Below are positions 12,245 to 47,997 of a DNA stretch of 64,000 nt, one piece after another; within the stretch, counting starts at the first letter, position 1; every line of letters starts with the position of its first letter. Below the pieces are notes generated by a model. It ran no database searches, was not told the DNA's origin, and saw only the letters and a list, made by a program, of their open reading frames with translations. The position numbers were made by a program, and so were the translations under genes. Source of the stretch: Piromyces finnis finn (taxonomy: Eukaryota; Fungi; Neocallimastigomycota); NCBI GenBank assembly GCA_002104945.1, contig MCFH01000056.1, positions 248,001 through 312,000 on the forward strand, in the 5' to 3' direction.

Positions 12245-12872
12245 CTGGATCTGTAAATAATAATTCGATAATGATTTAAAAATAATAAATATTATACATA
12301 TATAAATGTTAATAAAAGGATTTAAGCAACAGCAACAACAACAATAATATATATGCAAACCTGAAAAGATTTTTTTTTATTTTCCTGACGTTCATCTGGA
12401 TGTCTTCTTTTATTTTTCTTGCCAGGAGATGACTTGAAATCAATTGTGATTGTACCAGACATATATGAAATATTAATTGAAGTCATGTCTAATACATCTA
12501 TATCTACATCTTTATTCTCATTTTCATTAATTTGTTTTCCTTTATTTCTTTCTTTTTCTTTTTCTTCTTCGTAGACGTCTAAATCAATAATATTATTATT
12601 AATATTGGTAGTGGTAGGAGAAGAGGCAACTACAGTAGAAAAGGGAGTACTATCAGTAGTTGAATCTGTAGCAGGAGTAGTTGTAGTAGTATTGAAACTA
12701 TTGTAAATGTCATTCTATAAAAATAAAATAAAAAAAAAATTAATATATAATAAATAAATAATTTGAATAATTTTGAATCATATTAAAAATTATTAATTAC
12801 TTTCAATAAGTTAGGAACCTCAGGCATTAAGAATTTACTAAGTGAACTATCACGTGAAGAGTCTTTCCACAT
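12245..12872 (-). CDS. Uncharacterised spliced gene (Ser/Thr-rich, acidic and basic tracts) with a 6-nt micro-exon; last exon unresolved
   Basis: Exon 12872-12801 (MWKDSSRDSSLSKFLMPEVPNLLK), exon 12714-12361 (118 open codons ending KKNKRRHPDERQENKKKSFQ), micro-exon 12250-12245 ATCCAG flanked by AG and GT. Confidence 0.6.
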
Positions 12873-13588
12873 TTCTTATTTACACTTTACTATGATATTC
12901 ATATAAATTTTTATTATATTAAAAAAATTAATTGCAAAAATATATTTTTATTATTATTATTCTTTTACTTACAGTCAATACTTCTTAAAAAAACTGTTTA
13001 ATAAAATTTATTTATTATTTTTAAATTTAACAAATAATGGAAAAAAAAAGTTATATTTCTCTCTATATATATATTTTGTATTTTGTTTTCTTATTTTCAT
13101 AAAAAAAAAATAAAATTATTAAAAATAAATTGATTCCTATTTTTAGTTATATGAATATAATTTTATTTAATATAACTTCATTTTAAAATTATTAAATACA
13201 TAATATATATATAATATAATATATACTATATTTGAGATTTTATTTGAATATTCTTAATATTAATTATTTAGTTTTTAAATAAATTCATATGACAATAATA
13301 ATGTTTAAAAATATAAACAAAAAAATAATTAAAATTTATATTTTATTTATGTTATTGTGCTTGATTATTATTATTAATATTATTATTATTATTATATTTT
13401 GTCTTTTATATGATAAATTATTTATTTCTAATATTAAAATTATTATTTTTTATTGATAATATATAATGTATATAAATATTCCTTTTTACTTTTTATTTTA
13501 TACTGTATATCACTTATATTACCTACCAATCCCTCTTGGTAAATAGGTAAATGCTTTAAATATTGTCATTTTCATTTTTGTTACATAG

Positions 13589-13981
13589 TCAATATTTCAA
13601 GCATTGTCTTTTTTTATTTTGCCATAAAATAAATAGCTAAAAAGGAAATATTTATGTTTAATATAGAATATCACTTGATGTCGTTTGATTTACTATAGAG
13701 TAATTATATAAAAATAAAAAGCAATATTATATTATAGACATACTCTAATATATTTATATTTATGATTTATTAGGCTTCTGACTTTTGACTTGTTATTTGT
13801 GAACTAATTTCATGCAGTGTGTTTTAGAGTAATAAATTAATATGAAACCAATCATTTAAAATAATAATATGAATCGAATAAAACTTTAAAGCAAATATTT
13901 CTTATTTAAATTTAGTTGGACTATATTTCATTAGTATATTAAAATACTCAATTTTATTCATTTTTATGTATCTTTTACCAT
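13589..13981 (-). pseudogene. Possible degenerate paralogue of HD-A
   Basis: ATG|GTAAAAG start-only exon; intron GTATGTCTATAA...CTCTATAG resembling HD-A intron 2; YS..KL..SQKPNK in register with HD-A YS..EL..NQRPSR; last exon LFILWQNKKR; several stops. Confidence 0.35.
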
Positions 13982-15199
13982 CAGTGCATGATCTATAATA
14001 TAAAAAGATTAATCTGAATGAAAAAAAGAAACAGATAAAATTGTGTAAAATCTTTAATTTAAATAAATTAATTTTAATTAAGTTAACAAATTAAAAAAAA
14101 AAGTTTAATAATTAAATATTCAATTTCTATTAAAAAAAATAAATATTATTAGGGAAATTAATTAAAAAAATAAAGGATTTATTTATTAAAAAAAATGGCT
14201 TTAATTTTTAATGCTTTACCAACATTTAACATTTGGATATCCTTTTTATATTATAGTATAAACAGAATAAAAAAAAATCAAATAAACTATTAAATAAACA
14301 TATTTGAATTTTTATTTATTTTTTTGGTTTTTTAATTTTCTTTTATTTATTTTACGTATTTTAAATACAATTTTTTTTAAGTATTTCATTATAGTTAAAT
14401 AGAATATAATAGAATAATTCTAAATTGCTATCTTTAGTTTTTGTTTTTAGATTATTTTTTTTTTCAAAAAAGTATAAAATAATTTGTCCATATTTGGAAA
14501 ATTAAGTTATTTAAAATAAATGAGTAAAACGCTATTAACAATATGATTGGTATAAAATAATTAATAACTTTATTTATAATAAAATTTTATTATTTTATAT
14601 ATTAAATTAATATTATTTTTTTATTTGTAAAACTTTAAATATTATAAATAAATTAATCCAATTTTATTTTAATATTTGAGCCACCTTAAAAAAAAGGTTT
14701 TCTTTTGGTATAATCTATTACCACCAAATAAAAATTAAAAAAAGGTTTGAATATTTATTAATAAATAGATTTTTATAAAATAACAATATAAACCAGTTTT
14801 TGTCATTTAAATAAATAAAAAAATAAGTATATAAAAGAATTATGATAAATAGTATTTAAAATATTTTTAAAGCCATTTCATTATTTCAAGAAATAAACAA
14901 AAAACATTTAAATAAAACTATTTTGTTATTAATGATTATAATAAATATTTATAAAAATATTATTTTAAATTGATTTTAAATAGAATAATTTATCAATAAA
15001 TATATTATGATTAAACATATACTTAATAATGTATACATTGGTGTTAATGTATTAACAAATCTAATATATTTAATTTAAATATATTTAGAATATATATTGG
15101 AATGTAATTTTATAATATATTTTAATATTAATATTATTTATTATATTTGTAGTATAATAATAATATATATTATAATATTAATTAATATGAAATTTAATA

Positions 15200-16400
15200 T
15201 ATTTTGAAATGTATGTATAAATGGATCATTTAACTATAACTTTTTACATTTTATATAATTAAACTAAAATTTAAGAATATAAGTTTTAAAAACATTTTAA
15301 TAATCAAATAAATAAATAAAATAAACAAATAAAACTTGTTTACTTTTAAAGCTCTCTTTCTAAATATTAAACAAATAATAATTATTATTTGAAATATTTT
15401 ATAGGAATGCTTATGTTAATGTGTTGTTGAATTTTATATTAAAGAAGTTATTAATTTATTTATTTTTATAGTTAACAAAAAATATAAAATATTTTGAAAT
15501 TTGTACTATTATTTTCCATAATGAAAATAATATTATAAATATTTGATATTTAATTATATAGTCTTATTGATTATAATATTATTATTCAAATATTAACTCT
15601 ATATTAATTAAATTCATAATAAGCCATAGTCCATACTATATAAGACCATTTTAAATATTTTCTATTATATTAGATAATATAAATTAATATATTAACACAT
15701 ATATTATTTTATTTATTTAATTAATTATATTTATTTTTATTATTGGAAGATATTTTTGACCTATTTAATATAGTTAAAGAAAAAAGACAATTATAGAGAA
15801 TAGATTTTATATATTTTTATTAAGTATTTTAGGAAAAAAAGTAAAAAGTAATATTGTCTTTTTTTGTATTTCAAAATAAATATTAAATAAATATTTTTTT
15901 TTTTAAAAATAATAAATATATATACTAATTTTATTTATTTTAAATAATAGAAATTATATAATATAACCAAAATATATATAAGTTGAATAATAAATATAAA
16001 TAAACTAATTAACATACCGAGGTAATAAAAAATAAAATAAAAAACAATATTATAAATACCAGAGATTTTAATATTTGTTAATTGTATTACAAGATAATTC
16101 TGTATAAATTTTCAATAAATTTAGTGGCATAATAGTTGTACAATTGCATTATTTCATTGTATTATATTTATAATTTCTGTATACATAGTATACATAGTTA
16201 TTAATGTAATAATGGGATCAAGATACATTTAAATAATATTAATTGGCTAATGCTTCATATGCTTAGATTTATTTTTTATTATTGGTTTAATTTTAATTTA
16301 TGCAAAATATTGAATTCTTCTTGGCTATTTTGTATTATTTTAAATAATGTATTGTAAATAATTTAATTTATTATTAAATAAAATAGAAAAGAATAAAGAG
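15200..16400 (+). repeat. AT-rich dispersed repeat, also at about 24690-25770 (+), 33650-34840 (-) and partly 44140-44350 (-)
   Basis: Long near-identical tracts, e.g. taagccatagtccatactatataagaccatt and ggaagatatttttgacc. Confidence 0.85.
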
Positions 16401-17756: not shown

Positions 17757-18389
17757 TTATATAATATAATTTATTTTTGATGATCCTATAACACCAAAAA
17801 ATCTGGAGTATTTATAAAATTTGTTTTTTATTGTTCTTCTTCTTGCATTAATAAACCATTGGGTAACCTAAAATGAAAATAATAAAAAACAAAATTAAAA
17901 TTAATAAATAATAATATATAAATATATAAATTATAAAGTAATTATTATTAATTATATTGTCAATTTACTTGTTTCTATAGAGTTAATTTATTGTAAATAC
18001 AATTATTAAATTTATGTTATATAAAAATATAAATTATATTAGTCAAAAATATATATGATAAAAATATAATATATATGTTATTATAGACATACAAATGTTA
18101 AAGAAAGTCTTTTAGCAAGAAGCTCCTTTTCCCACCTTGACGGCCTTTGATTTATGTATACATAATATTCAAAAAGCTCATATTGTACATTTAAACTGTA
18201 ATTTTTGCGTTTTTTTTTATTAGTACCTTCTCCTCTTGTTTTGGATTCTATTTTAAAATAGTTATAATAATAATTATTATTATCCTATTATTTATATTAT
18301 AAAATATAATTTTAATCTTTTGAATTAAATATTTATTTTATATTTTTTTGAAAATAATAATTATTTTAAATGAAAAAATATCTTACCAT
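17757..18389 (-). CDS. Homeodomain protein HD-A, 103 aa, four exons
   Basis: Exons 18389-18387 (ATG only), 18284-18093, 17974-17969 (AAACAA = KQ), 17867-17757; all GT-AG and phase 0. Spliced frame is open: KRKNYSLNVQYELFEYYVYINQRPSRWEKELLAKRLSLTF-KQ-VTQWFINARRR. Confidence 0.85.
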
Positions 18390-21704: not shown

Positions 21705-24700
21705 TTTTAGAATCAATAACGACACACAAATATGAATAACAAAAGTATTTATAATTATTTTGTAAACTATAATAATTTTTTTATTAATATTTATTTTTGA
21801 TTGAAAATTACATTGCAAAGAATATATATATATAAATATTTACTATTTTCATTATTTTATTGTTATTATTTAATTTTTTAAGGATATGATATTAACATTC
21901 TAATATATATAAATAAGTAATTGAAAAATTTAATATTAATATAATAATGTATAATAATAATAATATTTTAATTTTCTATTTCTATATTTAAATAAAAGTA
22001 TATTAAATTATGAATAATTGCGTCTGGCATTTATGAACCAGTTATTAATCTATAATATTAAAATAAAATTTATAATTAGAAGTGTAATAAATATCATTAT
22101 AATAATATATAATAATTTATAATTTAAAATCATTTAAAATATATACCTGATTCTGGCGATAAAAAGGATTTTCAATATTTAATTATATAAATATACATTC
22201 ATTTATAGGTTGTATTATGTAGTATGAATAAAAAGAAAAAAAGAAAATATTGTTAATATATATATAATAATTTTATAAAATAATTATAATATTAATAATA
22301 ATTAATAACCTACCATTGTTAGACCAGTAGCCTCACAAAGACGACACTTCTCATTAATGGTAGGATAAGGGAAAGAATGGTTTGAAAGCCATTCTTTCAA
22401 TATATTAGTCACTTTATGGGGAAAATTAGGGCGCTTATGACCCTTTGAGTTCCCACGTCTTTTTATTTGTTTATTTTCTTTTGAAATTATATTTGAATAA
22501 AATTTTTTAACTGATCTGTTGTAATTATATATATTTGGATTTATATTTGGATTTATATTTGGATTTATATTTGAATTTATATTTGAATTTATATTTGGAT
22601 TTGGATTTGGATTTGGATTTTTGAAAAAATTGTAATAAGACCCGTTGATAAATGAGTTGTGATTACTAGAAGTGGCATTGTTATTAAATGATAACAATTT
22701 AAATGATGAACATGGTAAATTAAGAAAAGAAGCGTTAAATGGCATCAATGGTGGAGATATATTATTTAATATTGGACTTGTATTTTCAATTGTAAGAGAG
22801 TCTTGCTGTGATAAAACAGAAAATACCTATAATAGCATATATATAAATATAATTATTGAATTTAAAATAAAAAATAATATTTTTATATTTTTTTAATTAA
22901 TTATAATATAAAATATGTTATATAATAAATAAAATAATAAATAATATATATATTTATATTTTTTTTTTACAAATTTATTAATATTTACTGAATTATTACT
23001 CTGCTTTGAATTTTGACTTATATTTTGAATTAAGTCATTTTTACTCTCTCTGGTTTCCGGAAGCCTTAAAGGAACACTTGATACCTCGGTATAATTATTT
23101 GTTATAATATCACTAAGAAGTTCATTTGATAATGTAGAATTTCTTTTAAAAATCGGAGTGCCATTAGGTGATTCTAAAAAATTATTCGAGGGATTGAAAA
23201 GACTTTCTTTTGAATTCATTGTTTCTTTCTTTTATATTGAATATAAGTATAATGAGAAACTTTTTAAAGTGTTTTGATATATTTAATATATTTTAATATA
23301 ATGAGTGTTTTTAATTATATAAATAATACAAATTAAGAATAAATGTTTTAAAAACAGTCAAAATCCAATTCTTTTATATTCTTTTTTCAAATTTGACTTT
23401 TTTTTTAATTAATATATTTATTACTTACTTTTTATTATACTTTTAATCATTTTATTATACTGTTATATATAATTATACATATATGTATTTTATTACTTTA
23501 TATTATAATTTTTAATTGTTTTTGTAACATAAAGTGTAATATTATATTTTTCATTAATATTATACTATATTAGATAAGTTATTATTATTATTATTATATA
23601 TATATATTATTAATTAATATTTTGCAATTAGAAAAAATGTCAAAAAAAATTTTTTAAACCATACCCAGAATACATATACATATGATAAATTTTCCTTTTT
23701 TGTACTTATTTCTTAATAGAAAAATAGTAAGAACCTGAGACGTTCCATACATTATCATATTATATTTCGAAGAGAAAAGAAATATAATTCAATCTATATA
23801 ATATATACTTTAAAATAAAAAAATAACATATTTTTAATTGTAATATTTTATTGTTTTTATTATTATTTAAAAATATTATTAATAATGAAAATAGAAAATA
23901 TTTTAATAATATTTATAAATAATATGGTCATTTAACTTATGATGAACTAAAAGATTAACTGTTATAATATGAATGAATTTTAATATATTTCTCTTATAAT
24001 TTTATAAATAGTTCGAGTATAGTAAATAAATTACTAAATAAATAATTATATTATTATGTATCCTTTATTATTAAAAATTATATATTAAAATCATATATTA
24101 AAAGGATTAATTATAATATATTCTATGCCAGTACGCTTTATTGTACACATTATAAATTATAAAAATAATAAAAATAAATAGAATTAAAATTTTTAAACTT
24201 AATAAAACAACTTCAAAAATATATATATTAATATATTAAAATATAGTTTTACTCTTTACCAAAAATTTTGTTTTTTAAAAAGTATTGGTTATAATAAAGT
24301 TAAGATTATGTAGAAATTCAACTTCCATGTCAAAATTAAAATAATAACAATAATAATATTTTTATAATTAATTAAGATTTAATCTTTTAATACTGGCGGT
24401 CTAGTTCTCGAATTAATTAATGTGATATAATAAAAGATCAAAAAAGCTAATTATTTATTAATATTTTTTATTATTTAATATATTTCAAGTAATAATTATT
24501 ATAATTATAATGAATCTTTTTAATATTTAATTTATGAAAAGTAATCATAATAAATTGTAAAGGTAACTGTATAAAAACATTCCTGTAAAATTCATAATTA
24601 TAAATGCTTTTCATAACTAATAAATTAATGGCTTTTCAAACTTTAAACAAAAAGAAAAGAAAAAAAATTTAATATAAAATTTAATATATTATGAAATGTA

Positions 24701-25875
24701 TGTATAAATGAATAAATGGATCATTTAACTATAATTACTTTACATTATATATAATATATATAATTGAACTAGTTTTAAAAATTAAAAAGAAAGTAATTTT
24801 AAAAATATTTTAATAATCAAATAAATAACCAAAATAAACATAGAAACTTTAATTCTTTTAAAATTCTATTTCTCTTTACTAAATAAAATAATAATGGATT
24901 AAAATTTTATATATCTTATATATTTTATAGGAATGCTTATGTTAGTTTATGTTAGTGTGTAGTTAAAATTTATATTAAAGAAATTATTTATTTATTTATT
25001 TATTTTTATAGTTAACAAAAAATATAAAATATTTTGAAATTTGTACTATTATTTTCCATAATGAAACTATTATTATAAATATTTGATATTTAATTATATA
25101 GTCATATTGGTTATAATATTATTATTCAAATATTAACTCTATATTAATTAAATTCATAATAAGCCATAGTCCATACTATATAAGACCATTTTAAATATTT
25201 TCTATTATATTAGATAATATAAATTAATATATACATACACATATATTATTTTATTTATTTAATTAATTATATTTATATTTATTATTGGAAGATATTTTTG
25301 ACCTATTTAATATAGTTAAAGAAAAAAGACAATTATAGAGAATTGGTTTTATATATATTTTTATTAAGTATTTTAGGAAAAAAAATAAAAACTAATATTG
25401 TCTTTTTTTTTATATAATAAAATAAATGCTCTTTTTAAAAGCAATATGCATTTAATAATAATTTTATTTATTTTAAATAATAGAAATTATATAATATAAC
25501 AAAATATATATAAATTGAATAATAAATATAAATAAACGTTAGTTCATAACACCGGGGTAAAAATACAAAAAAAACAATAATTTTTAATACCAGATTTTAA
25601 TATATTTAAATTATATTAAAGAAGAATTCTCTATGAATTTTCAATAAATAAATTTAGTGGCAAAATGTAGAATAATAGTTTTACAATTGTACAATTATTT
25701 TTAAAATTTCTGTATACATAATTAATAATGTAATAATGTATCAGATAAATTTAAATGATTCTATTTGATAAATGCTAACAACAAGAATAAATACAATATT
25801 AAGAACTTACTAACCTTAAATCAAGCAAACCACTAATAATTCTTAAAATTTTATTGACGATAATAATAATTAATT
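21705..25875 (-). repeat. Left arm of a large inverted repeat (partner 32900-37825)
   Basis: Coordinates of the HD gene mirror exactly (sum 59529 across 22008-23219 and 36310-37521). Flanks match with scattered SNPs and indels; about 730 bp (33010-33740) is present only in the right arm. Confidence 0.95.
22008..23219 (-). CDS. TALE-like homeodomain protein HD-B, 263 aa, four exons
   Basis: Mirror of 36310-37521; micro-exon 22152-22147 AATCAG; last exon INNWFINARRNYS*. Confidence 0.9.
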
Positions 25876-26334
25876 TTTTTATTTATTATTTTATTCAATT
25901 GTAATGAAAACATTTTTACTATCAAAAATTATACACTTATAGTTTATAATAATAATATAAACAATATTACATAGAAAACATAAATAAGCAACAATAATTA
26001 TTGAACAATGAATAGAAATGAAAATTTATAAAGAAATATAATAAAATACATTTCAAAAATGAAGAATATAGATTTTACAAAATCATTTAAGATTCAATAT
26101 ATTTTACAACAAAAACAGTAACAATAATAATACTACAAAAAAATCCATCAACTATAATAAACAATATTGTATTAATGTATTTTTCACCAGATTAAAATAT
26201 CTCGCTTAATATTAAATATATATCTGATACATTTAAAAATATTAAAAATAGAAACAGTTTGATAAATTATAAAAATGTAAGATATTATTTTACTTCTCAA
26301 AAAGTTTTCTACTTTTAAATGTATTTCCATTAAT

Positions 26335-30769: not shown

Positions 30770-30843
<74 letters not shown>

Positions 30844-31859: not shown

Positions 31860-32470
31860 ACTCTTCAATGAGTTCATATGTTCTTATTCAAAGAAATACT
31901 AACGTTAAACCTTGCATATATAACATTAAAAATGCACCTTTGCCATATCGGTATGACGTCAACTCTCTTGATTACATTAGATTCCTTACTAAATCTTTTA
32001 ATAAGTAACTTCATTGAGCTACTAATGAAAAGGATTGTTTTAGTAAGAAAAGCCTCAAGACCCTCTACATATTGAACATGAGACCTCAATGAACTGTAAA
32101 GCTGTCCATTCAAATGTATTTGTTCCGTCTTATCGATTTGTAGCTCATCATAAGTTAAAGTTCCACCAAAAAGAAACGTAAAAATATAGTTATAAATTGT
32201 TTTTCTTACTTCAATTTCAGGGAGTAAGTAAGTGATGAGTTGATTATTGTATTTATTAAAAAAAAAAGGGTAAAAATATCATCAATAAAGTTAAATGAAG
32301 AAATTCAGCATTCAGAGAATGCAGAACATTCCAAAATCCAATGGTAAAAAGGTTTTTCATTATATCCGCAACACGAGAAACTTTATTGCTGGTATTAGCA
32401 ATTCTGATAGTGTTTTCATAACAGCATCGAATACGAATAATCAAAGTAATTCCTAAATTTAAATGAGTTT
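31860..32470 (-). mobile_element. 3' fragment of the same LINE family as 2810-4400
   Basis: IIRIRCCYENTIRIANTSN and GLEAFLTKTI match 3800-4390. Confidence 0.85.
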
Positions 32471-32899
32471 TGTTTAGATTAAAAGCATAAATAAAAATTA
32501 TATCTATACTTACATGAATAGTTTTTCTAATGAAGCTTGAAATATTGTAAATAATTTAATATAAACTTCTCATTATTAGGAATAGAATTATCATGTTTTG
32601 GTAAATAATATCTATAATTTATAAGAGTTATACAAGAATATTCTGTATTTTAACTAGAGCATTAGGTAGTTTTAATTTTTCGAAAACGTAAAAATAACAG
32701 TATGAATACAGTAGAGATATGTCCAACACAGTAATCTTTTTTAGTAATCCCATCAATTAATAACCATCAATGTTCCAACTTAGATAAAAAGAAAAATTAT
32801 TTTTTTTTTCGAAGATTAAAAATTGTTATTATTTCTAATACTATTAATAGAGTATGAAACATTTAATTAAACAAGAATATTATTTGTATGTAAAAGCAT

Positions 32900-35800
32900 T
32901 ATCAATTATTGAATTATTATTATCTTCAATAAAATTTTAAGAATTATTAGTGGTTTGCTTAATTTAAGGTTAGTAAGTTCTTAATATTGTATTTATTCTT
33001 GTTATTTAATAATAATTATTTCAGTTTAAGATCTTATTTATCTTGTTGTTAACTTTGATTTGTTAAAATAAATTAATATTGACTTATTGAACAAAGGAAG
33101 GATAAAAAAAAAAGGTACAATTTATTTTTAAATTCATAACTAATATATAACTAAGTCATTTTTAATTCACTTTAAAGAAAATAACACGGATATATAACAT
33201 TTTCCTTTTGATAGTTTTATGTACTGTTTAAGTCTTTTTTTTTTTTTTTTTCCTTTAGAGCACGCGTTCGCCATTAATCTCTCGACAACATTTACTTTTA
33301 ATGAAATTTGAATTTACACCTTTTTTTTTAAACTTTACTAGCAAATAGTCAACTTCTTTGAGAGAATAATATAAAGTCGAATATGAATTTAGAAAAAATA
33401 AAATAGAAATTGAACTCAAACTAGAGTAAATTAAAAAAAAAAAAAAGACTTATATTTACTATTGAGAATATACAAAGAAAAATTACTATTTTAATAATGT
33501 AAATAAACAAATATGAAAATTTCTTTTAAATAAAATAATTGATGAATTGAATAATTGATGAATTGAATAATAATTGATGAATTATTATATTACATAGATT
33601 TATTAATATATTAATACATTAATACATTACATAAATTATAATACAGAATAAATAATATAGCCAAGAAAAAATTTAATACTTGATGTAAATTAAAATTAAA
33701 CCAATAATAGAAGATACGTAAGATACATCTAAGCATTTTAAGTATTGATCAAATAGTATCATTTAAATTTATCTGATACATTATTACATTATTAATTAAT
33801 TATTAATTATGTATACAGAAATTTTAAAAATAATTGTACAATTGTAAAACTATTATTCCACATTTTGCCACTAAATTTATTTATTGAAAATTCATAGAGA
33901 ATTCTTCTTTAATATAATTTAAATATATTAAAATCTCTGGTATTACAAATTATTGTTTTTTTTGTATTTTTACCTCGGTGTTATGAACTAACATTTATTT
34001 ATATTTATTATTCAACTTATATATATTTTGGTTATATTATATAATTTCTATTATTTAAAATAAATAAAATTAGTATATATTTATTATTTTAAAAAAAAAA
34101 ATATTTATTTAATATTTATTTTGAAATACAAAAAAAGACAATATTACTTTTTACTTTTTTTCCTAAAATACTTAATAAAAATATATAAAACCAATTCTCT
34201 ATAATTGTCTTTTTTCTTTAACTATATTAAATAGGTCAAAAATATCTTCCAATAATAATAATAAATATAATTAAATAAATAAATAAAATAATATATGTGT
34301 GTATATATTAATTTATATTATCTAATATAATAGAAAATATTTAAAATGATCTTTTATAGTATGGCCTATGGCTTATTATGAATTTAATTAATATAGAGTT
34401 AATATTTGAATAATAATATTATAACCAATATGACTATATAATTAAATATCAAATATTTATAATAATAGTTTCATTATGGAAAATAACAGTACAAATTTCA
34501 AAATATTATATATTTTTTGTTAATTATAAAAATAAATAAATTAATAACTTCTTTAAAATAAAAATCAACAACACATTAACATAAACTAACATAAGCATTC
34601 CTATAAAATATATAAGATATATAAAATTTTAATCCATTATTATTTTATTTAGTAAAGAGAAATAGAATTTTAAAAGAATAAAAGTTTCTATGTTTATTTT
34701 GGTTATTTATTTGATTATTAAAATATTTTTAAAATTACTTTCTTTTTAATTTTTAAAATTAGTTCAATTATATATATTATATATAATGTAAAGTAATTAT
34801 AGTTAAATGATCCATTTATTCATTTATACATACATTTCATAATATATTAAATTTTATATTAAATTTTTTTTCTTTTCTTTTTGTTTAAAATTTGAAAAGC
34901 CATTAATTTATTAATTATGAAAAACATTTATAATTATGAATTTTACAGGAATGTTTTTATACAGTTACCTTTACAATTTATTATGATTACTTTTCATAAA
35001 TTAAATATTAAAAAGATTCATTATAATTATAATAATTATTACTTGAAATATATTAAATAATAAAAATAAAATTTATATATAATTAACTTTTTTGACATTT
35101 TATTATATCACATTAATTAATTCGAGAACTAGACCGCCAGTATTAAAAGATTAAATCTTAATTAATTATAAAAATATTATTATTGTTATTATTTTAATTT
35201 TAACATGGAAGTTGAATTTCTACATAATCTTAACTTTATTATAACCAATACTTTTTAAAAAACAAAATTTTTGGTAAAGAGTAAAACTATATTTTAATAT
35301 ATTAATATATATATTTTTGAAGTTGTTTTATTAAGTTTAAAAATTTTAATTCTATTTATTTTTATTATTTTTATAATTTATAATGTATACAATAAAGCGT
35401 ACTGGCATAGAATATATTATAATTAATCCTTTTAATATATGATTTTAATATATAATTTTTAATAATAAAGGATACATAATAATATAATTATTTATTTAGT
35501 AATTTATTTACTATACTCGAACTATTTATAAAATTATAAGAGAAATATACTAAAATTCATTCATATTATAACAGTTAATCTTTTAGTTCATCATAAGTTA
35601 AATGACCATATTATTTATAAATATTATTAAAATATTTTCTATTTTCATTATTAATAATATTTTTAAATAATAATAAAAACAATAAAATATTACAATTAAA
35701 AATATGTTATTTTTTTATTTTAAAGTATATATTATATAGATTGAATTATATTTCTTTTCTCTTCGAAATATGATATGATAATGTATGGAATGTCTCAGGT

Positions 35801-37825
35801 TCTTACTATTTTTCTATTAAGAAATAAATACAAAAAAGGAAAATTTATCATATGTATATGTATTCTGGGTATGGTTTAAAAAATTTTTTTTGACATTTTT
35901 TCTAATTGCAAAATATTAATTAATAATATATATATATAATAATAATAATAATAACTTATCTAATATAGTATAATATTAATGAAAAATATAATATTACACT
36001 TTATGTTACAAAAACAATTAAAAATTATAATATAAAGTAATAAAATACATATATGTATAATTATATATAACAGTATAATAAAATGATTAAAAGTATAATA
36101 AAAAGTAATAAATATATTAATTAAAAAAAAAGTCAAATTTGAAAAAAGAATATAAAAGAATTGGATTTTGACTGTTTTTAAAACATTTATTCTTAATTTG
36201 TATTATTTATATAATTAAAAACACTCTTTATATTAAAATATATTAAATATATCAAAACACTTTAAAAAGTTTCTCATTATACTTATATTCAATATAAAAG
36301 AAAGAAACAATGAATTCAAAAGAAAGTCTTTTCAATCCCTCGAATAATTTTTTAGAATCACCTAATGGCACTCCGATTTTTAAAAGAAATTCTACATTAT
36401 CAAATGAACTTCTTAGTGATATTATAACAAATAATTATACTGAGGTATCAAGTGTTCCTTTAAGGCTTCCGGAAACCAGAGAGAGTAAAAATGACTTAAT
36501 TCAAAATATAAGTCAAAATTCAAAGCAGAGTAATAATTCAGTAAATATTAATAAATTTGTAAAAAAAAAATATAAATATATATATTATTTATTATTTTAT
36601 TTATTATATAACATATTTTATATTATAATTAATTAAAAAAATATAAAAATATTATTTTTTATTTTAAATTCAATAATTATATTTATATATATGCTATTAT
36701 AGGTATTTTCTGTTTTATCACAGCAAGACTCTCTTACAATTGAAAATACAAGTCCAATATTAAATAATATATCTCCACCATTGATGCCATTTAACGCTTC
36801 TTTTCTTAATTTACCATGTTCATCATTTAAATTGTTATCATTTAATAACAATGCCACTTCTAGTAATCACAACTCATTTATCAACGGGTCTTATTACAAT
36901 TTTTTCAAAAATCCAAATCCAAATCCAAATCCAAATATAAATTCAAATATAAATTCAAATATAAATCCAAATATAAATCCAAATATAAATCCAAATATAT
37001 ATAATTACAACAGATCAGTTAAAAAATTTTATTCAAATATAATTTCAAAAGAAAATAAACAAATAAAAAGACGTGGGAACTCAAAGGGTCATAAGCGCCC
37101 TAATTTTCCCCATAAAGTGACTAATATATTGAAAGAATGGCTTTCAAACCATTCTTTCCCTTATCCTACCATTAATGAGAAGTGTCGTCTTTGTGAGGCT
37201 ACTGGTCTAACAATGGTAGGTTATTAATTATTATTAATATTATAATTATTTTATAAAATTATTATATATATATTAACAATATTTTCTTTTTTCCTTTTTA
37301 TTCATACTACATAATACAACCTATAAATGAATGTATATTTATATAATTAAATATTGAAAATCCTTTTTATCGCCAGAATCAGGTATATATTTAAAATGAT
37401 TTTAAATTATAAATTATTATAAATTATTATAATGATATTTATTACACTTCTAATTATAAATTTTATTTTAATATTATAGATTAATAACTGGTTCATAAAT
37501 GCCAGACGCAATTATTCATAATTTAATATACTTTTATTTAAATATAGAAATAGAAAATTAAAATATTATTATTATTATACATTATTATATTAATATTAAA
37601 TTTTTCAATTACTTATTTATATATATATTAGAATGTTAATATCATATCCTTAAAAAATTAAATAATAACAATAAAATAGTGAAAATAGTAAATATTTATA
37701 TATATATATTCTTTGCAATGTAATTTTCAATCAAAAATAAATATTAATAATAAAATTATTATAGTTTACAAAATAATTATAAATACTTTTGTTATTCATA
37801 TTTGTGTGTCGTTATTGTTTCTAAA
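32900..37825 (+). repeat. Right arm of the large inverted repeat
   Basis: Reverse complement of 21705-25875 plus an extra segment. Confidence 0.95.
36310..37521 (+). CDS. TALE-like homeodomain protein HD-B', 263 aa, four exons
   Basis: Exons 36310-36540, 36703-37215, 37377-37382 (AATCAG = NQ), 37480-37521. HD reads HKRPNFPHKVTNILKEWLSNHSFPYPTINEKCRLCEATGLTM-NQ-INNWFINARRNYS. Confidence 0.9.
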
Positions 37826-37869
37826 AATATTATTGATTTTATTTTATTAATATGAAAAATTATAAAAAC

Positions 37870-37900
<31 letters not shown>

Positions 37901-37999
37901 TATAAATATTACAAAATTAACTAGTTATAAATTCATAAAGTACATTTAAAAATAAATAAAATAGGTTTTTATATTCTCAAAGTACAAAATATAAATATA

Positions 38000-38191
38000 T
38001 TTTTTTTTTAACTTCCGAGTGCATTTCTCCCATCAATCGCATCAATCAAGAGTTAGCACCAATGGTGGTTCTTAGAGAAACGTCGGCTCATTCCTATTGC
38101 TAGGTGGTTGTGACCCTCCTGGTCTGTCATACTGTTTCTTCAGCTTCGACGCTCACTTAATCCATATACATTAGATGCATGTCGTTGTACG
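38000..38191 (-). mobile_element. 5'-truncated copy of the tRNA-derived SINE
   Basis: Matches the 3' 190 bp of 43181-43723 including the poly(A) tail. Confidence 0.85.
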
Positions 38192-39744
38192 ACTCTTCTT
38201 TTTAGCAACTTTTTTCTTTTTCGTATCTTTTACCACTAATTAATTTTAAAATATAATATAAAATGTGGATTATTTTTATTTTATATTATTAAACTTTTTA
38301 AAAAATAACAAAGAAAACTTTTTAATTAAAAAATTGACCAATAAACATTCAAAATCAATAATTAAAAGATCTTTAAAAAAAGTTTACCTTTTACTAAAAC
38401 ACTACTAAATAAATTGATGAATTGTTATCTTTTAATTATATAATGTTATTATTATTAAAGCTTTATAATATTTTAATATTGGTAAATTGTATTTTAATAA
38501 GAATATTTAATATATTTTATTAACTAATTAATTAAATTAACTAATACTTAAAGTATTAGTATTAATATATTATATTGCTATTAAAAGTTTACTTTAAACT
38601 TATGTTGAGTATTTTTAATATGCCATATTATGCCATATAAATAAAAATAATATACGATTATTAAATATTTTATAGGATATACCACCAATACTTTTTAAAT
38701 TATAATATCTTAACTATATTAAATATTAATATCAAAGTATATTAAAATAATTTATAAATACTAATGGAATTTTAAAGTAAAATATAATATATGAAATCTG
38801 GTTTAACTGTAATAATACATTGTTTCAATTATTAAGTCATGTTATTCATAGTTTAAATACTAATATATGATTTGAAATATATCATTTTCCTTTATTTAAT
38901 TATAATAATAATTAATAACTTTAATAAATAATTTAATTTTTAAAAGATACATTATTTTATGGTTTTCTAATAAATAAAACATAAACAATATTTATTCAGC
39001 ATTACAATAATAATAAAATATATTAATAATAACTATTATTTTTGTAATAAGAATATAGAATAGTCACATTTATATTTTTAATATTGATAAAAAGTTTAAT
39101 ACTACTATTAAATAATCTATAAGAATTACAAAATTATTTCGTTTTTTAATTCTAATACCTTATAACTTTATTCCCATATAATATTTATCTTTTCCTTCTC
39201 TAATTCATTTTTAATACACGCTTTTAAAAAGATTTAATTTAATTAATTATTAAATTTAAAAAAAAGGAAAAAATAAATTAATTATTAATTTTTTTTTAAT
39301 AATAATAAAATATTAATAAAAAAATAAATAAATAATAAAACAAATTAAATTTATATTATTAGCTCTATTATATATATTCTTTTTAGATTAAATAGGAACT
39401 TTTAATAATATGTTTTAACTCCTTTCTTTTAAAATTTAATAACAATTATTGTAGTTAATAATTAAGAATAATAACTTTAATAAAATGTAATTTTATAAAA
39501 GATAGCAATTATAATAATGGTTTATAAAGGTATATATAAGAAGCATTTGTTTTCTTGATTATTTATTATTTTAAAATTGAATTTCATTATTCAATCCTTA
39601 TTTCAATATAGCAATCAAGAATTCAAAAAGTAGAGTTTAATAACATTTATTAAAATATTAATAAAAATATTTCTATAATATATTTAAAATTAAATTATTT
39701 TAAAAAAAGAAATATAATTTTCTATCTACATTTTACGAATCAAA

Positions 39745-39897
39745 ATGCCAAGCTCAATGTTAAATTTAGCTTTATTAAAATCTACTAGAACTGGTTCTGG
39801 AGCTATTACATATTCAAAACCAAGAAATAATATAACTAAAAATAAAGTTAAAAGTAACATTAATCCATATGTTACTTGTAGCTGTGTTGTTCAATAA
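39745..39897 (+). CDS. 50-aa CaaX peptide, candidate lipopeptide pheromone precursor
   Basis: caaaATG...TGT GTT GTT CAA TAA TGA; MPSSMLNLALLKSTRTGSGAITYSKPRNNITKNKVKSNINPYVTCSCVVQ*; visibly more GC-rich than its flanks. Confidence 0.6.
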   Translation: MPSSMLNLALLKSTRTGSGAITYSKPRNNITKNKVKSNINPYVTCSCVVQ

Positions 39898-40623
39898 TGA
39901 ACAAAAAATCAAACTAAAAAAAAAATAGTACTATCATTTATTCATAATTTTAATTTTACAAATATATAAATAAAAAAATAAAATATTTTTTCACTTTTTG
40001 TTAATTACTATAATTTCATAATTTTAAATATATTTTAAAATATTCACATGTATTCATATGTATACATGTATGTAAATTCTTTTATAATAAATTTAAATAG
40101 TAATAAAGAATTACATTTTAATTATAAAAAAAAAATAAAAAATAAAAAAATAAAATAAAATAAAAAAGAAAAGATTTATTTAATAATTAAAATAAATTTT
40201 GTGTTTTTTTATAATAAACATATAAATATTTCAATTTTACTTATTAAAAGTTATTTATTAGACAAACAAGCAAAATATTTAAAATTATTACTATTTCTTT
40301 TAATGTGTAAAGTTTAATAAAGTTATTAAATTATTAATTTGATAAAAAGTTAGACTTAAAAAATTATTAGTTAAACTAAGAAATTTAAAGTAATCATTAA
40401 AATTACTTTCAAGGTTGTTTTTTAATTTATATTTATATTTATTTTAATTATATTTTATTGCAAAAATAATATTTATTTATGAATAAGTATTACAAACTAT
40501 AATACAAACACAAAATAAATATTCAATTTTTAACTTTTTTTATAATCTTAAATTCAATGTTTTATAATTTTAAATTTAATTATATTTTAAATTTTTTATT
40601 ATAAATTTGATAATATTGAATAA

Positions 40624-41781
40624 TTAGTTTTTTTTCTTTAAAATATTAAGAACTTCGATAATTTCATGTCTATGTTTTATTTTATCTTCAGGTCTTATCA
40701 TTTCTAAATATTTAGAACATTTATTCATTTTATTTTCTTTTATCATCTTTTTCACCTTATTTATGATGAATTTATAATCATGTTTATTTTTGCCTTTGGT
40801 TTGAATAAACTTGTAACCCTCATATCTGTTGATACCATTAAAAATATTAAAATATGTTAGAATAAATATTATAAATATAATAATTTTAATTTCATTAATA
40901 ATCATATTTAATTAATTATATTATTATAATTAAATATTAAAATATTAAAATACATAAATACATAATTGTATAAATATATACATACACATATTGATGAATT
41001 ATTTTATGAATTTTTTGGCGGTGAATAAAAGCTTTCTTTACCTCATCATTTTGGCATTTCCATAATTCTCCAAAATATCTATTTAAAATTTTATAATTAT
41101 ATGGAATTGCATTATTTTGTTTAAAATAGTAGGTCAAGTATTTTTTAAAAATCATAAAACAATTTAATGGACGAGGTATTTTATTACCGTATTTTCTTTT
41201 TCCATTGAAAATAAATGATGTGTAAACAGTTGATATTTTTTGTAAAATATCTTTATCTTTCATTAAAAATTCAACATCACAATCGTTCAATTCTTCCATA
41301 AAATACAAAAGATATTCTTTATTCATTACTTTTGCTAATTTTAATATTTCAATTCTATTTGAAGCTTGTTGAATTAATTTTCTTACTTCATTTGAAAAAT
41401 CATCATTGACATTAGATGGGATATAATAATAATTATAATAATCAATTTTATTAAAAGCGTTTTTATAAACATCAATATTGATATTATTATTGCTATTACT
41501 ATTGATATTTTCATTAATATTAATAATATTATTAATATTTTGATCATAATTTGTAAAATTATTATTGATTACTTGATAATTAATATTTTGATTATAATTC
41601 AATTGATTGCAATTGACTATATTGATGATTTGGCCATTATTAATTTGATTAATATAGATTTGATTGTTATTAATATTATTATTATAATTAACAATAGTTA
41701 AATAGGAATTGCAATCATCATAATTATAATTATTGCTATTTTTTAATGTAAATTCATTCTTGAATAAATTTTCATAATCGA

Positions 41782-41826
<45 letters not shown>

Positions 41827-42157
41827 GATTGATATTATTAATATCAATAACTGGAATGTAATTCACTTGATTATTATTATTATTTTGATAATTATTATGA
41901 ACATTGATTGTTTTCATGTTATTACCAAAATTATCAAAGATGTAGTTAGTATTAAAAGGAGGAGAGACGATATTTGGTTGGGAAGTAACCTGAATATTCT
42001 GAATATTGGTTTTAGTAAAGTTCGTCAAGGTAGGATCTAACACATCAGAGAAATTACCACTTTGAAGATTTAAAATGGAATTATTAGAATTCTTTGTACT
42101 TAACATATCAAATTGTTGATAATTAATATTATTAATGTTATTAATATCATAAAACAT
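40624..42157 (-). CDS. MATA/Sox-type HMG-box transcription factor, about 457 aa, two exons
   Basis: Exon 42157-40986 and exon 40825-40624 (phase 2, GTATGT..ACAG). HMG box KIPRPLNCFMIFKK...LNRYFGELWKCQNDEVKKAF...HKIIHQYVYEGYKF; Asn-rich N-terminus. Confidence 0.9.
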
Positions 42158-43036
42158 TTTTAATAATTTAAAAAAAAAAGGGAAAAAATAATTATTTAAT
42201 TATTAATTTATTTTCTTTTTTATTTTAAAAAAAAAGTAAAGATAAAACAGAAAAAAAATTAAAAAAAAAAAAAAAAACGAATTTATATACTTGAATTTTT
42301 AACTTTTTTTTGTGTCATCTATTTCTTTCAGAATAGTCCAATAATTCAAAAATAAAGGTATACAAATTTCGAAATAAATAAGATTTTAAACTAGTATTAA
42401 CCTTTTTAAACTTTTATTAATCAATTGTAGTTTATTTTGAAAATTGATTAATAGAAAGTTTTCTAGCAATAAACTTTATTTCTGTTTAACTATATTACAC
42501 AGTCGATTTTAACATTTTTAAAGCATTAGAGTTTAAATTTTAAAAACCTTTCTATTTTCAATTTTATAATATTTAATTATAGTTTTAAAGTAAAAAATCA
42601 ATCAAATAATTAAAGTCATTATTATGAGACATAGTACTTAAAATATAAAAAATAAAATTTAATAAGCTATTTTTATTTTTTTTTATCAGTGGGATACCTA
42701 ATTCTCACATAAAAATATTAAAGCATTAATTTAAATATTGAATTAATAAAAAAATTTATATAGATTTATAAACCTTTTTAAATGGATGTTGATTTTATTC
42801 ATTATCATTATATTTATACATAATACCTTTTCTATATATACATTTCATTAATAAATTAATAAATATTGTAAAATAAAATTTAAATAAATGCTTTTCGTTA
42901 TTAGCATGAAAAAAAATTTAACAAATTACTTTTTCATTATTTTCTTTTTTCTTTTATAATTATTATAATTATCAAAGTTTTTTTTGATCAGTAACTATAA
43001 TTAAATAAAATTTATAAAAATTTGTTGGATGACGAA

Positions 43037-43077
<41 letters not shown>

Positions 43078-43180
43078 AAAGTCTGGATAATAGTAAAAAA
43101 AAAAAAAAAAAAAGCGCTTTTAATAATTTAGATTTATAATAATAATGTAATATTCTTGGATACTTATATTTTTTTATTAT

Positions 43181-43723
43181 TTTTTTTTAACTTCCGAGTG
43201 CATTTTTCCCATCGATCAGAGTTAGCTCCAATGGTGGTTCTTAGAGAAACGTTGGCTCATTCCTATTGCTAGGTGGTTGTGACCCTCCTGGTCTGTCATA
43301 CTGTTTCTTCAGCTTCGACGCTCACTTAATCCATGTACATTAGATGCATGTCGTTGTACGATATTTCACAACTACAATGCTAAGCCTCTTATAGTCAAAT
43401 TGATCACGTGTCAACCGCCCCCTAATGTTTACACTTAAATTGATTAAGGAATATTATGTGTTTTTGGCATAGCCTAAGTCACCACTTATTAAGTTCTAAT
43501 TTGGAATGTACCATGTACACTAGACCCTCTCAGGCCGGCTAGACGAGTGTTATTATCATAGTAGTAAATTAGAAAGTTCATTTATACTTACCTGAATATC
43601 ATAACCCAACCCATGGCAAACCCAGTGGGAAAATCCACAGGCACTGACATCTGCGGGGTCGAACCAGAAGCCTTATGTATGCTAAGGAAACGCCTTAACA
43701 ACAGGATAAAAACTGGAACGACT
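43181..43723 (-). mobile_element. tRNA-derived SINE, about 540 bp, full length
   Basis: Minus-strand 5' end GTCGTTCC...GTTAAGGCG...GGTTCGACCCC (A-box-like and B-box), poly(A) tail, 14-bp TSD tatttttttattat (43167-43180 and 43724-43737). Confidence 0.8.
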
Positions 43724-44139
43724 TATTTTTTTATTATGGTAATTTATTAATATTTCATTTCGAAAACTTTATTAATAATTAAAAATTTGTATTTATACAA
43801 AAATTTTTGGCTTATGCTAAATTACATACATTATCAATACATTATTAATACATTATATTAAGTACATTTTACCATATAACATTAATAGGCAAAAAATATT
43901 TTATAAATTTTTTAAAATAAGTTAAATGTATTATCCTTTAGAATTATGTAAAGTAATAATGTAACATTATATATAAAGATAAACTTTTAACTATTTTTAT
44001 TGTACAATATATAATACATTTATTGTATTTAATGTATATTATTAGAAGTTGTTAATTTAGGATTTATAATTATTTCAACCTTTATTAGAGTAATGTATGA
44101 TAAATAAATACATTACTCTAATGTATTTATTAATAAAGA

Positions 44140-45437
44140 ATAAATAAATTTATAAAATTCCACAACACACTAACATAAACATGCTTATAAAATATAAGAG
44201 AAATAGAATTTTAAAAGAATAAAAGTTTCTTTAATTACTTTGTTTATTTAATAGATTATTAAAATATTTTTAAAATTACTTTCTTTTTAATTTTTAAAAT
44301 TAGTTCAATTATATATATTATATATAATGTAAAGTAATTATAGTTAAATGATCCATTTATTCATTTATACATACATTTCATAATATATTAAATTTTATAT
44401 TAAATTTTTTTCTTTTCTTTTTGTTTAAAGTTTGAAAAGCCATTAATTTATTAGTTATGAAAAGCATTTATAATTATGAATTTTACAAGAATGTTTTTAT
44501 ACAGTTACCTTTACAATTTATTATGTTTACTTTTCATAAATTAAATATTAAAAGGTTTATCATAGGTATAATAATTACTACTTGAAATATATTAAATAAT
44601 AAAAATAAAATTTATATATAATTAACTTTTTTGACATTTTATTATATCACATTAATTAATTCGAGAACTAGACCGCCAGTATTAAAAGATTAAATCTTAA
44701 TTAATTATAAAAATATTATTATTGTTATTATTTTAATTTTGACATGGAATTTGAATTTCTACATAATCTTAACTTTATTATAACCAATACTTTTTTAAAA
44801 AACAAAATTTTTGGTAAAGAGTAAAACTATATTTTAATAAATTAAAATATATATGTTATTTAATTTACTTTAAAAACTTCAATTTTATTTATTTTTTATC
44901 ATTTTTACAGTATATAGTGTATACTATACAGTGTAGGTATAGGATATATTATAATTACACCTTTAAATATATGGTTTTAATACATGGTTTTTTATAAAGG
45001 TAATATAATAATATAATAATCTATTTAGTAATTTATTTACTATACTTGAGCTATTATAAGATTATAAGAGAAATATATTAAAATTCATTTATATTATAAC
45101 TGTTAATCCTTTAATTCATAGAAGTTAAATGATCGTATTGCATATGAATAATATTTAAAAAAATTTTATTATAATTTCTATTTCCATTATTAATAATACT
45201 TATAAAAATTATAAAATATTACAATTAAAAATGCTATTTTTTTTTATTTCAATATATATATTATATGGATTTAATTATATTTCTTTTCTCTTCGAAATAT
45301 GATATGATATTGTATGGAATGTCTTAGGTTCTTACTATTTTTCTATTAAGAAATAAAAACAAAAAAGGAAATTTCATCATGTGTATTTTATGTATATGGT
45401 TTAAAAAATTTTTTGACATTTTTTCTAATTGCAAAAT

Positions 45438-45473
<36 letters not shown>

Positions 45474-46777
45474 TTATCTAATATAGTATAATATTAATGA
45501 AAAATATAACATTACACTTTATGTTATAAAAAACAATTAAAAAGTATAATATAAAGTAATAAAATACATATATGTATAATTATATATAACAGTATAATAT
45601 AATGATTAAAAGTATAATAAAAAGTAAGTAATAAATATATTAATTAAAAAAAAAGTCAAATTTGAAAAAAGAATATAAAAGAATTGGATTTTGACTGTTT
45701 TTAAAACATTTATTCTTAATTTGTATTATATATAAAAATTTTTTTTATATAAAAATATATTAAATACATCAAAACACTCTAAAAAGTTTCTCATTATATT
45801 TATATTCAACATAAAAGAAAGTAACAATGAATTCAAAAAAAAGTCTTTTCAATCCCTCGAATAATTTTTTAGAATCACCTAATGGCACTACGATTTTTAA
45901 AAGAAATTCTACATTATCAAATGAACTTCTTAATGATATTATAACAAATAATTATACCGGGGTATCAAGTAGTCCTTTAATGCATCTGATAACCAGAAAG
46001 AGGAAAAATGAATCAATTCAAAATATAAATCAAAAATCAAAGCAGAGTAATAATTCAGTAAATATTATACATTTTATTTATTACTTTATTTATTTATTTA
46101 TTATTTATAAAACATATTTTTACATTATACTTATTTAAAAAATATTAACATTCTTTAAATTTAATAATTATATATATATATATATATATATATTATTATA
46201 GGTATTTTCAATTTTATCGTCACAAAACTCTTTTACAATTGAAAATAAAAGTCCAATATTAAACAATACATCTTCATCACCAGTACCAATAATTGACCCC
46301 TCTTTTATTAGCTCATCATGTTTATCATTTGAATTATTTTCATTTAATGATATTTTCACTTCTTTCTATTATTCCAACTCAATTATCACCGAGTCTTGTT
46401 CTAATTTACTTACAAATCAAAATAAAAATAAAAAACAAATTTTGAATCAAAATATAAACCCAAATCCAAATCCAAATATAAATAAAAATCTATGTAATTA
46501 CAAAAAATCAATTAAAAATGCATATTCAAATACAATTTTAAAAGAAAATAAACAAAAAAAGAAATATATGAACTCAAAGGGTCATAAGCAACATATTTTT
46601 TTCCATAGAATGAACAATATATTGAAAGAATGGCTCTCGAACCATTCTTTCTATTATCCTACCATTAATGAGAAGTGTCGTCTTTGTGAGGCTACTGGTC
46701 TAACAATGGTAGGTTATTAATTATTATTAATATTATAATTATTTTGTAAAATTATTATATGTATATTAACAATATTT

Positions 46778-46815
<38 letters not shown>

Positions 46816-47280
46816 CTAAATAATACATCGTATAAATGAATATATATTTATATAATTAAATATTGAAAATCCCTTTTATCTTCAGGATCATGTATAAATT
46901 TTAAATGATTTAAATTATAAATTATTACATTTCTAATTTCTAATTATAAATTTTATTTTAATACTATAGCTTGATATCTGGTTCATAAATGCTAGACGCC
47001 GTTATGCATAATTTAAATATAGAAATAGAATATTATACATTATTATATTATTATTAAAATTTTCAATTACTTATTTATATAATTTATATATATGTTAGAA
47101 CTAATATATCCTCAAAAAATTAAATAATAAACAATAAAATAATAGAAATTGTAAATATATATATTATTTTCAGTGTAATATTTAATCAAAAATAAATAAA
47201 ATAATCTCAGTTTATAAAATAATTATAAATACTTTTGTTATTCACATTTATATGTCTTAACTGTATCTAAAATATATTAA
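44140..47280 (+). repeat. Third, more diverged copy of the upstream-region + HD cassette
   Basis: Collinear with about 34560-37825 and ends at about the same point downstream of the gene. Confidence 0.9.
45827..47011 (+). CDS. TALE-like homeodomain protein HD-C, 261 aa, four exons
   Basis: Exons 45827-46057, 46202-46708, 46886-46891 (GATCAT = DH), 46970-47011; open spliced frame ending GLTM-DH-LDIWFINARRRYA*. Confidence 0.88.
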
Positions 47281-47659
47281 TTTTAAAATTATTTCTAATT
47301 AAATATTATATAATATGTGGTTTTTTTAATATAGAAAAAGATATTAATATATATTTTTTAGTGTGTTAACTATTTTATACTATATTATATATTGTATATT
47401 ACAATGATCCATTTAATATTAAAACATTTACATTATTAGTATTTATAATGCATTATGTAAATATACCAATCATGCATATATAATTATAATTATATATAGT
47501 GTACTTTGCTAATCATATTAGTTTTGAATTGAAAAGACTACTTTTTCAAAAAATAATATTAATAAATGGATGTTCTAGGCAAGGAAAAGGTTTTAATATT
47601 GGATTATAATCAATTATTATAATTCAATATTTAATTATTAATAATAATATAAAGATTTT

Positions 47660-47997
47660 ATGGTAGTAAAAGAAAAGAATTTATTTTCAAATAAATAAAT
47701 AAAATTAAATATATATAAAAAATAAAATTATACAGAGACATATTGTAAATACTATCGATCTTGATTTATATTTTCTAAAATAAATAAATAAATAATAATA
47801 ATAATAATATATATATATATATATTGTACTTATTTTAGCTAATTAACTTTTATACAACATAAATTTGATAATTATATTTTCAATAAATTAACTTTATAGA
47901 AACAAGTAAATTTACAATATAGTTATTAATAATTACTGTATAATTTATTTATATATATTACTGTATTAATTCTTATTTTTTATTATTTTCATTTTAG
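47660..47997 (+). pseudogene. Relic of an HD-A-type gene (introns and micro-exon only)
   Basis: ATG|GT at 47660; ttatag AAACAA gtaaattt at 47900-47905 with flanking introns homologous to HD-A; last exon replaced by the dispersed repeat at the acceptor AG. Confidence 0.7.

Follow-up and report, generated by a model that had tools for sequence, protein, structure and literature searches.

A repeated homeodomain, CaaX-peptide and HMG-box gene cassette in the anaerobic gut fungus Piromyces finnis and its likeness to fungal mating-type regions

Does the genome of an anaerobic gut fungus contain a mating-type (MAT) locus? The answer bears on their breeding for biomass conversion; to our knowledge, no sexual cycle is known for Piromyces finnis or other anaerobic gut fungi. 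The question is raised by a stretch of 64,000 nucleotides of P. finnis DNA (contig C185:248001-312000, hereafter the window), in which an earlier reading, made from the sequence alone, proposed a sex locus combining homeodomain (HD) genes, a high mobility group (HMG)-box gene and a short peptide gene ending in a CaaX motif. With a GC content of 11-31%, the window is very rich in A and T; C185 is a 359-kb contig in an assembly of 56.46 Mb and 232 contigs. The guess that the DNA belongs to an anaerobic gut fungus was correct, as the protein matches bear Piromyces finnis BCR36DRAFT tags. The three kinds of gene are also real, and their linkage, judged from the genomic comparisons below, is very unlikely to be due to chance. 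However, they form a cassette present in several copies, which are distributed over two places in a genome that gave no Ste3 or Ste2 match. We lean, without great confidence, towards the view that the window contains a lineage-specific amplified cassette whose inventory of genes resembles that of a fungal MAT region, and not a demonstrated allelic MAT locus. A role in mating can reasonably be proposed but is not established here. New here are the evidence from transcripts that proves splicing, the analysis of selection, the joining of contigs into a second cassette array, the single-copy state of one HD gene (HD-A) and the two-residue loop of another (HD-B). The DNA runs found derive from the source strain, and all locus comparisons were made within one assembly.

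The repeated cassette and the palindrome

In the reading that we favour, the window would hold the chromosomally anchored copy of a much-duplicated cassette of the Piromyces lineage. The unit comprises a three-amino-acid-loop-extension (TALE)-class HD gene, a small CaaX gene, a convergent SOX/MATA-like HMG gene and a second TALE-class HD gene. The order is HD > CaaX > < HMG > HD, and this order and orientation recur with intact open reading frames (ORFs) in the copies. In the window, the cassette copy occupies 33603-47293 (+ strand) and is collinear with C3:22092-35167 over a 13.7-kb block at 80-92% identity (blastn). An HD exon, the HMG ORF (86-89% identity) and the CaaX ORF (69-94%) were found to recur jointly on contigs C3 (73 kb) and C11 (50 kb). 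There are at least six cassette copies, one on C185 and the others in a second array, C143-C11-C3-C197. The heads of C3 and C11 are 99.8% identical, the tail of C3 is 100% identical to the end of C197, and the tail of C11 matches C143 at 99%; judged from these joins, the four contigs are probably one repeat array split by the assembly into redundant pieces. The possibility that C3 and C11 are alternative haplotypes of the window locus was ruled out, their ends joining C197 and C143 with no flanks in common. Because its flanks are unrelated, the second array as a whole is likewise not a haplotig of the C185 locus. Between the second-array cassettes, pieces of a cation-channel gene (Ion_trans, E 4e-41) recur, at C3:65590-66618, C3:40807-41331, C11:9079-10986 and the end of C197.

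Genome-wide, six intact HMG paralogues (with decayed copies on C143 and C197), six CaaX paralogues and about nine intact genes of the type of HD-B, the first HD gene of the cassette, were counted. A lone diverged copy of the HD-B family on C165 (144100-145600), which has neither a CaaX nor an HMG neighbour, may be an ancestral dispersed member. Among the conditions that the sequence-only reading had set for its own refutation was that its genes fall among many dispersed housekeeping transcription-factor paralogues. Ordinary HD and HMG genes are indeed dispersed in the genome, whereas the cassette family occurs only at the two loci and as the lone HD copy on C165. Only the window has the HD-A gene, itself single copy, together with the palindrome and a position anchored in the chromosome.

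The first HD gene also appears to have been duplicated in inverted orientation around an insertion of a long interspersed nuclear element (LINE), resulting in a 16-kb palindrome (21705-37826). The inverted arms (21705-25244 and 34291-37826) flank a spacer of about 9 kb with the LINE, whose retrotransposon ORFs lie at 27469-29543 (+ strand) and include an RVT_1 match at 28689-29543 (E 7.1e-35). Over 1524 nt the arms are 100% identical, and the remainder is 96-98% identical; the part with the HD-B gene shows no differences. An assembly artefact was considered for the palindrome and is unlikely, since the structure is internal to the contig, has a unique 9-kb spacer and has arms differing by 0-4%.

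The homeodomain, CaaX-peptide and HMG-box genes

Four HD genes of two types had been read from the sequence, and all four were recovered: HD-A with a canonical loop, two copies of HD-B, and HD-C. HD-B copy 2 (36310-37521, + strand; 3′ untranslated region to about 37731) gives a Homeobox_KN match and has exons at 36310-36540, 36703-37215, 37377-37382 and 37480-37521. Copy 1 (22008-23219, − strand), a TALE-class gene for 263 aa, is its mirror image and was placed by the tblastn map and the identical inverted arm, with exons at 22989-23219, 22314-22826, 22147-22152 (a micro-exon) and 22008-22049. HD-B is TALE-class by sequence, with PF05920, a WL..H..PYP motif and WFINARR. Its loop (WLSNH-SFPYP) is one residue shorter than that of PKNOX1/MEIS, giving a two-residue extension and not the three residues after which the class is named. 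The protein stops directly after helix 3 and has no alpha2-like tail.

Transcription was followed in RNA-derived contigs from four runs in three studies of the same organism, mapped onto 36250-42200. The HD-B joint 36540>36703 (GT..AG) was seen in contigs of two of the four runs. The joint 37215>37478 was observed to carry an extra AATC in three of the four runs; the AATC and the next AG make up a 6-nt micro-exon, AATCAG (37377-37382). HD-B is transcribed, and is spliced through this micro-exon, which encodes homeodomain residues 43-44 (NQ) and brings helix 3 into register. An AG-6nt-GT element (encoding DQ) is kept in four paralogues located by pattern. The public gene models miss it: the NCBI models P0001 (HD-C) and P0002 (the paralogue on C3) skip the micro-exon and lack two residues before helix 3, and the protein search gave no annotated entry whose sequence equals that of the transcribed HD-B. 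At position 36441, contigs from two runs of one study have C, where both assembled HD-B copies have T, a synonymous change (ACT>ACC) that may reflect a strain polymorphism, editing, or a difference between the two arms of the palindrome that was left unresolved.

HD-C (45827-47011, + strand; NCBI model P0001) is a diverged HD-B paralogue with 58-81% amino acid identity to HD-B. Its exons lie at 45827-46057, 46202-46708 and 46970-47011, with a candidate micro-exon at 46886-46891 (GATCAT, encoding DH).

HD-A (17757-18389, − strand), as read from the sequence, encodes 103 aa with a canonical, unextended loop. Its exons are 18387-18389 (the ATG only), 18093-18284, the micro-exon 17969-17974 (AAACAA, encoding KQ) and 17757-17867. 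The position and phase of this micro-exon match those in the HD-B family, and the partial NCBI model P0121, which contains ...LTFKQVTQWF..., includes the KQ residues. HD-A was found to be single copy in a genome-wide search and lies 3.6 kb from HD-B copy 1 on the same strand. Its PDB matches are TGIF, MEIS, PBX and MATa1; the MATa1 match is weak (E 0.008), and the TALE likeness runs through helices 2-3. Helix 3 reads WFIN.R and is a1-like. Both HD length classes are thus present as HD-A and HD-B, in tandem on the same strand and not divergent as in HD1/HD2 pairs. Because a micro-exon structure this rare is common to HD-A and the TALE-class genes, HD-A may be a derived relative of the HD-B family rather than an ancient HD2-class partner.

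The CaaX-peptide gene (39399-39990, + strand) consists of a promoter block with a TATA box near 39531, an ORF at 39745-39897 and a transcript reaching to about 39990. The peptide noticed in the sequence-only reading held up: it has 50 aa, ends in CVVQ and, in being short and ending Cys-aliphatic-aliphatic-X, has the form of a CaaX precursor. It is the sole 30-80-aa ORF ending in CaaX in the window, and 0 such ORFs arose in 100 Markov shuffles. Six distinct paralogues, which fall into two subtypes, keep the ORF open; the three indels among them all preserve the frame, and CVVQ is retained even where the stop codon has changed. The last 20 residues are invariant across the copies except for one V/I change, and the predicted mature peptide, which would end in ...NPYVTCSC, is the same in all of them. 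A block 170-350 nt upstream of the ORF, with the TATA box, is 87-97% invariant among the paralogues. One RNA contig spans 39628-39895 over the gene with one mismatch. Ahead of the CaaX, the peptide has a mildly basic stretch. None of 598 pattern matches in JGI metagenome contigs was related to the peptide, the ESM Atlas gave nothing above noise, and NCBIfam gave no match.

The HMG-box gene (40624-42157, − strand; NCBI model P0003, 421 aa) has exon 1 at 40986-42157 and exon 2 at 40624-40825. Its protein was found to contain an Asn-rich N-terminal part, then a conserved helical pre-HMG region and a single SOX/MATA-like HMG box. P0003 scores 20.5 bits against the Pfam HMG_box cut-off of 25.4, which its relatives P0006, P0007 and P0013 pass. 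The family profile matches SOX9, SOX2, LEF1 and SRY (best E 6e-8, SOX9) ahead of HMGB/NHP6, and the AlphaFold model (mean predicted local distance difference test score, pLDDT, 82.5) superposes on the HMG boxes of SOX11/17/18 with template modelling scores of 0.73-0.80. The one HMG-box gene expected from the sequence is accordingly present, and family profile and predicted fold place it in the sequence-specific SOX/TCF/MATA class. In model m27991d923212, the pre-HMG region forms five helices at residues 3-67 (about 217-281 of P0003; pLDDT 84-95). The pre-HMG motif LL.FME..S..DVE.LL is kept in gut-fungal homologues, and Foldseek gave no PDB match for the region. A homologous HMG mRNA of another gut fungus is polyadenylated and stands in a metatranscriptome-like contig. 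When the HMG family alignment was compared with metagenome contigs, only one relevant locus was obtained. All contigs of the closest HMG homologue stop about 1 kb downstream, just short of the place expected for the CaaX gene.

What do the rates of change say about the products? Among the six intact HMG paralogues, dN/dS was 0.05-0.37 for the pre-HMG and HMG part and 0.3-0.6 for the Asn-rich N-terminal part, with about 1.0 in one near-identical pair. In the HD-B family, dN/dS was 0.14-0.42 for the homeodomain part and 0.7-1.4 between array copies for the region before it. These ratios indicate that the DNA-binding domains are under purifying selection and that the N-terminal regions change at a near-neutral rate. 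The homeodomain part of HD-C gave 0.4-0.83 against the array copies, with changes at conserved homeodomain positions, and its constraint looks relaxed. Within the same unit, synonymous divergence was about 0.02-0.18 for CaaX, 0.05-0.19 for HMG and 0.3-0.9 for HD, all from small counts; this inequality points to older HD diversification, concerted evolution of CaaX and HMG, or both.

Mating-type locus or amplified cassette

In the amplified-cassette reading, both transcription-factor classes and the peptide may form a joint module for cell identity or for signalling between cells. After farnesylation (X being Q), trimming and methylation, the peptide would be exported or anchored in the membrane, and a programme of development or of cryptic sex would be set by the HD and HMG proteins. 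A number of observations weigh against this reading. The recurrence of the cassette is not independent evidence of joint function, because the three genes became associated once, in a single event, and were copied afterwards. Instead of a signal, the peptide may be a small protein anchored in the membrane. Transcript mapping spanned HD-B copy 2 to the HMG gene; what matched the window copy of the HMG gene was short or paralogue-like, with neither a clean RNA contig nor an intron joint. The HMG homologues P0005, P0010, P0007, P0107 and P0017, on metagenome contigs with short flanks, have no HD or CaaX gene nearby. The Ste3-like receptor that the sequence-only reading led one to look for did not emerge: PF02076 (STE3) and PF02116 (STE2) gave no genome match at E <= 1 in an exon-by-exon search that had no fungal positive control and leaves absence unproven. 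A published survey of G-protein-coupled receptors in the P. finnis transcriptome also has no pheromone-receptor class in its list (PMC5168858).

How does the locus compare with known sex loci? In the literature searched, no MAT locus has been described in Neocallimastigomycota. Identity regulators of MAT loci are of the HD, HMG or alpha-box kind, and HD-A, HD-B, HD-C and the HMG gene belong here. Such loci occupy defined places (one, or two unlinked) and are not dispersed repeats, and P. finnis has at least six cassettes at two places. The basidiomycete MAT regions, with HD1/HD2 and pheromone genes and including the fused Cryptococcus type, are alike in having a TALE-class HD near a canonical-length HD, short CaaX genes and more than one paralogous copy in surroundings rich in repeats, and in combining conserved homeodomains with N-terminal regions that vary. 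Unlike in these regions, no Ste3 was found in the locus or genome of P. finnis, the HD genes are in tandem and not divergent, each unit has an HMG gene, the units lie at two genomic places, and the HD loop has two extra residues, not three. The MAT locus of Candida albicans and other Saccharomycotina (a1 HD, alpha2 TALE HD and a2 HMG) similarly combines HD and HMG regulators in one locus, and HD-A resembles yeast a1 in its small size and WFIN.R helix 3. However, the yeast genes are split over two idiomorphs, whereas all are on one haplotype and multi-copy here; HD-B, unlike alpha2, does not continue past helix 3 into a C-terminal tail, and yeast MAT has no pheromone genes. In the Mucorales/microsporidian sex locus (TPT, HMG sexP/sexM and RNA helicase), the candidate sex regulator of an early-diverging fungus is likewise a sequence-specific HMG gene. 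No such linkage exists here: the only TPT matches fall on C167 and C113. The P. finnis HMG gene further differs in having several copies, and no helicase was observed next to it. The putative MAT locus of Rhizophagus irregularis (HD2 and HD1-like) was proposed from gene content alone and is single copy with many alleles among strains (PMC11414155). This early-diverging, presumed asexual fungus is similar in having adjacent HD genes; the P. finnis locus differs in its added HMG and CaaX genes, its amplified cassette and its derivation from one strain.

Three other explanations have to be weighed. The C185 region might be a true MAT locus, with idiomorphs or alleles and a farnesylated pheromone, for which the second array would hold extra specificities or silent copies; we consider this unlikely. 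Homologues of STE6, STE20, GPA1 and DMC1, which would fit it, were reported in anaerobic fungi, in surveys that turned up meiosis and signalling genes and neither mating-type genes nor mating peptides (PMC6883316). The gene kinds fit as well, being a TALE-class HD, a canonical HD with WFIN.R, a sequence-specific HMG and a short CaaX precursor. The single-copy HD-A adjoins HD-B, C185 is the sole place with both HD classes, HMG and peptide, and the region is repeat-rich and palindromic. A dN/dS of about 1 in the HD N-terminal region together with conserved homeodomains is the pattern known from HD alleles of basidiomycetes. MAT regions of basidiomycetes can also contain identical pheromone genes in several copies, as well as paralogous HD sub-loci, which likewise counts for a true MAT locus. 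Opposed to it are the occurrence of six or more cassettes at two loci in one assembly, a predicted mature peptide identical in all copies, and the unmatched STE3/STE2. The DNA data come from the source strain, and no sexual cycle is known to us. The tandem rather than divergent arrangement of HD-A and HD-B is a further objection, and the rare micro-exon structure that they share suggests recent common descent; the end of HD-B after helix 3, short of any alpha2-like tail, also counts against it. A cryptic sexual identity in which the HD-A/HD-B pair and the HMG protein would control mating, with the farnesylated peptide as trigger, a receptor other than Ste3, and the second array as further specificities or silent copies, is improbable in our view. 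We know of no lipopeptide pheromone outside Dikarya, and the peptide would be the first.

An ordinary lineage-specific expansion of transcription-factor paralogues by segmental duplication, with no role in sex and with the CaaX product as a small prenylated membrane protein or a hitch-hiking ORF, is possible, if doubtful. Such an origin would agree with a family derived from a TALE-class gene that has a lone dispersed copy on C165, with cassettes lying amid duplicated ion-channel fragments and retroelements, with the expression of HD-B in RNA-seq of ordinary cultures and with the relaxed constraint of HD-C; the basic stretch before the CaaX resembles membrane-targeting tails. However, the three gene kinds are intact and constrained in every cassette copy, chance clustering of HD, HMG and the genome's only family of CaaX mini-ORFs is very unlikely, and the conserved TATA promoter argues for a working peptide gene. 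That the cassette is instead the cargo of a large mobile element, spread by transposition and not for a host function, is very improbable. Units of 12-14 kb are present in multiple copies and both orientations in transposon-rich DNA, which agrees with this, but the unit borders, in a search that was not systematic, showed neither terminal repeats nor a transposase or recombinase. Further points against transposition are the inter-cassette ORFs, which are ion-channel fragments and unknown proteins, the differences of 10-25% between copies, and a synonymous divergence that varies among the genes of one unit. For the amplified-cassette reading and its rivals alike, the locus gives testable candidates: a synthesisable peptide, two HD classes, an HMG factor and a defined place for isolate comparison.

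Other features of the window

Repeat debris around the genes had also been described from the sequence. The LINE and a retroposon resembling short interspersed nuclear elements (SINEs) were confirmed; the long terminal repeat (LTR) debris was not, the verified LTR elements lying at 53-62 kb, outside the interval 12245-47997 to which it had been assigned. The SINE-like retroposon, with a poly(A) tail, is at 38000-38195 (− strand), inserted between HD-B copy 2 and the CaaX gene. Its RNA word depth was about 1e5 at 38049-38192 in all four runs, and Rfam and tRNA scans of the region, including this element, gave no match. The HD relics that had been proposed were not recovered either: tblastn and six-frame reading revealed no HD-coding relics near 12.2-14 kb and only a relic of the segment upstream of the cassette HD gene, at 15182-16379 (− strand), which is 83.5% identical to 33598-34862 and has no HD ORF.

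Elsewhere in the window, an ORF at 6483-7040 (− strand) has a weak GDSL-lipase match of 20.6 bits, below the cut-off. Ty3-type LTR pieces at 53312-53686 and 56440-61195, with RNase H and an integrase with chromodomain, are present in two copies, and an inverted repeat (58333-58882 and 60646-61195) lies within the Ty3-type region. A tandem array with a 10-nt period and about 50 copies occupies 54206-54718.

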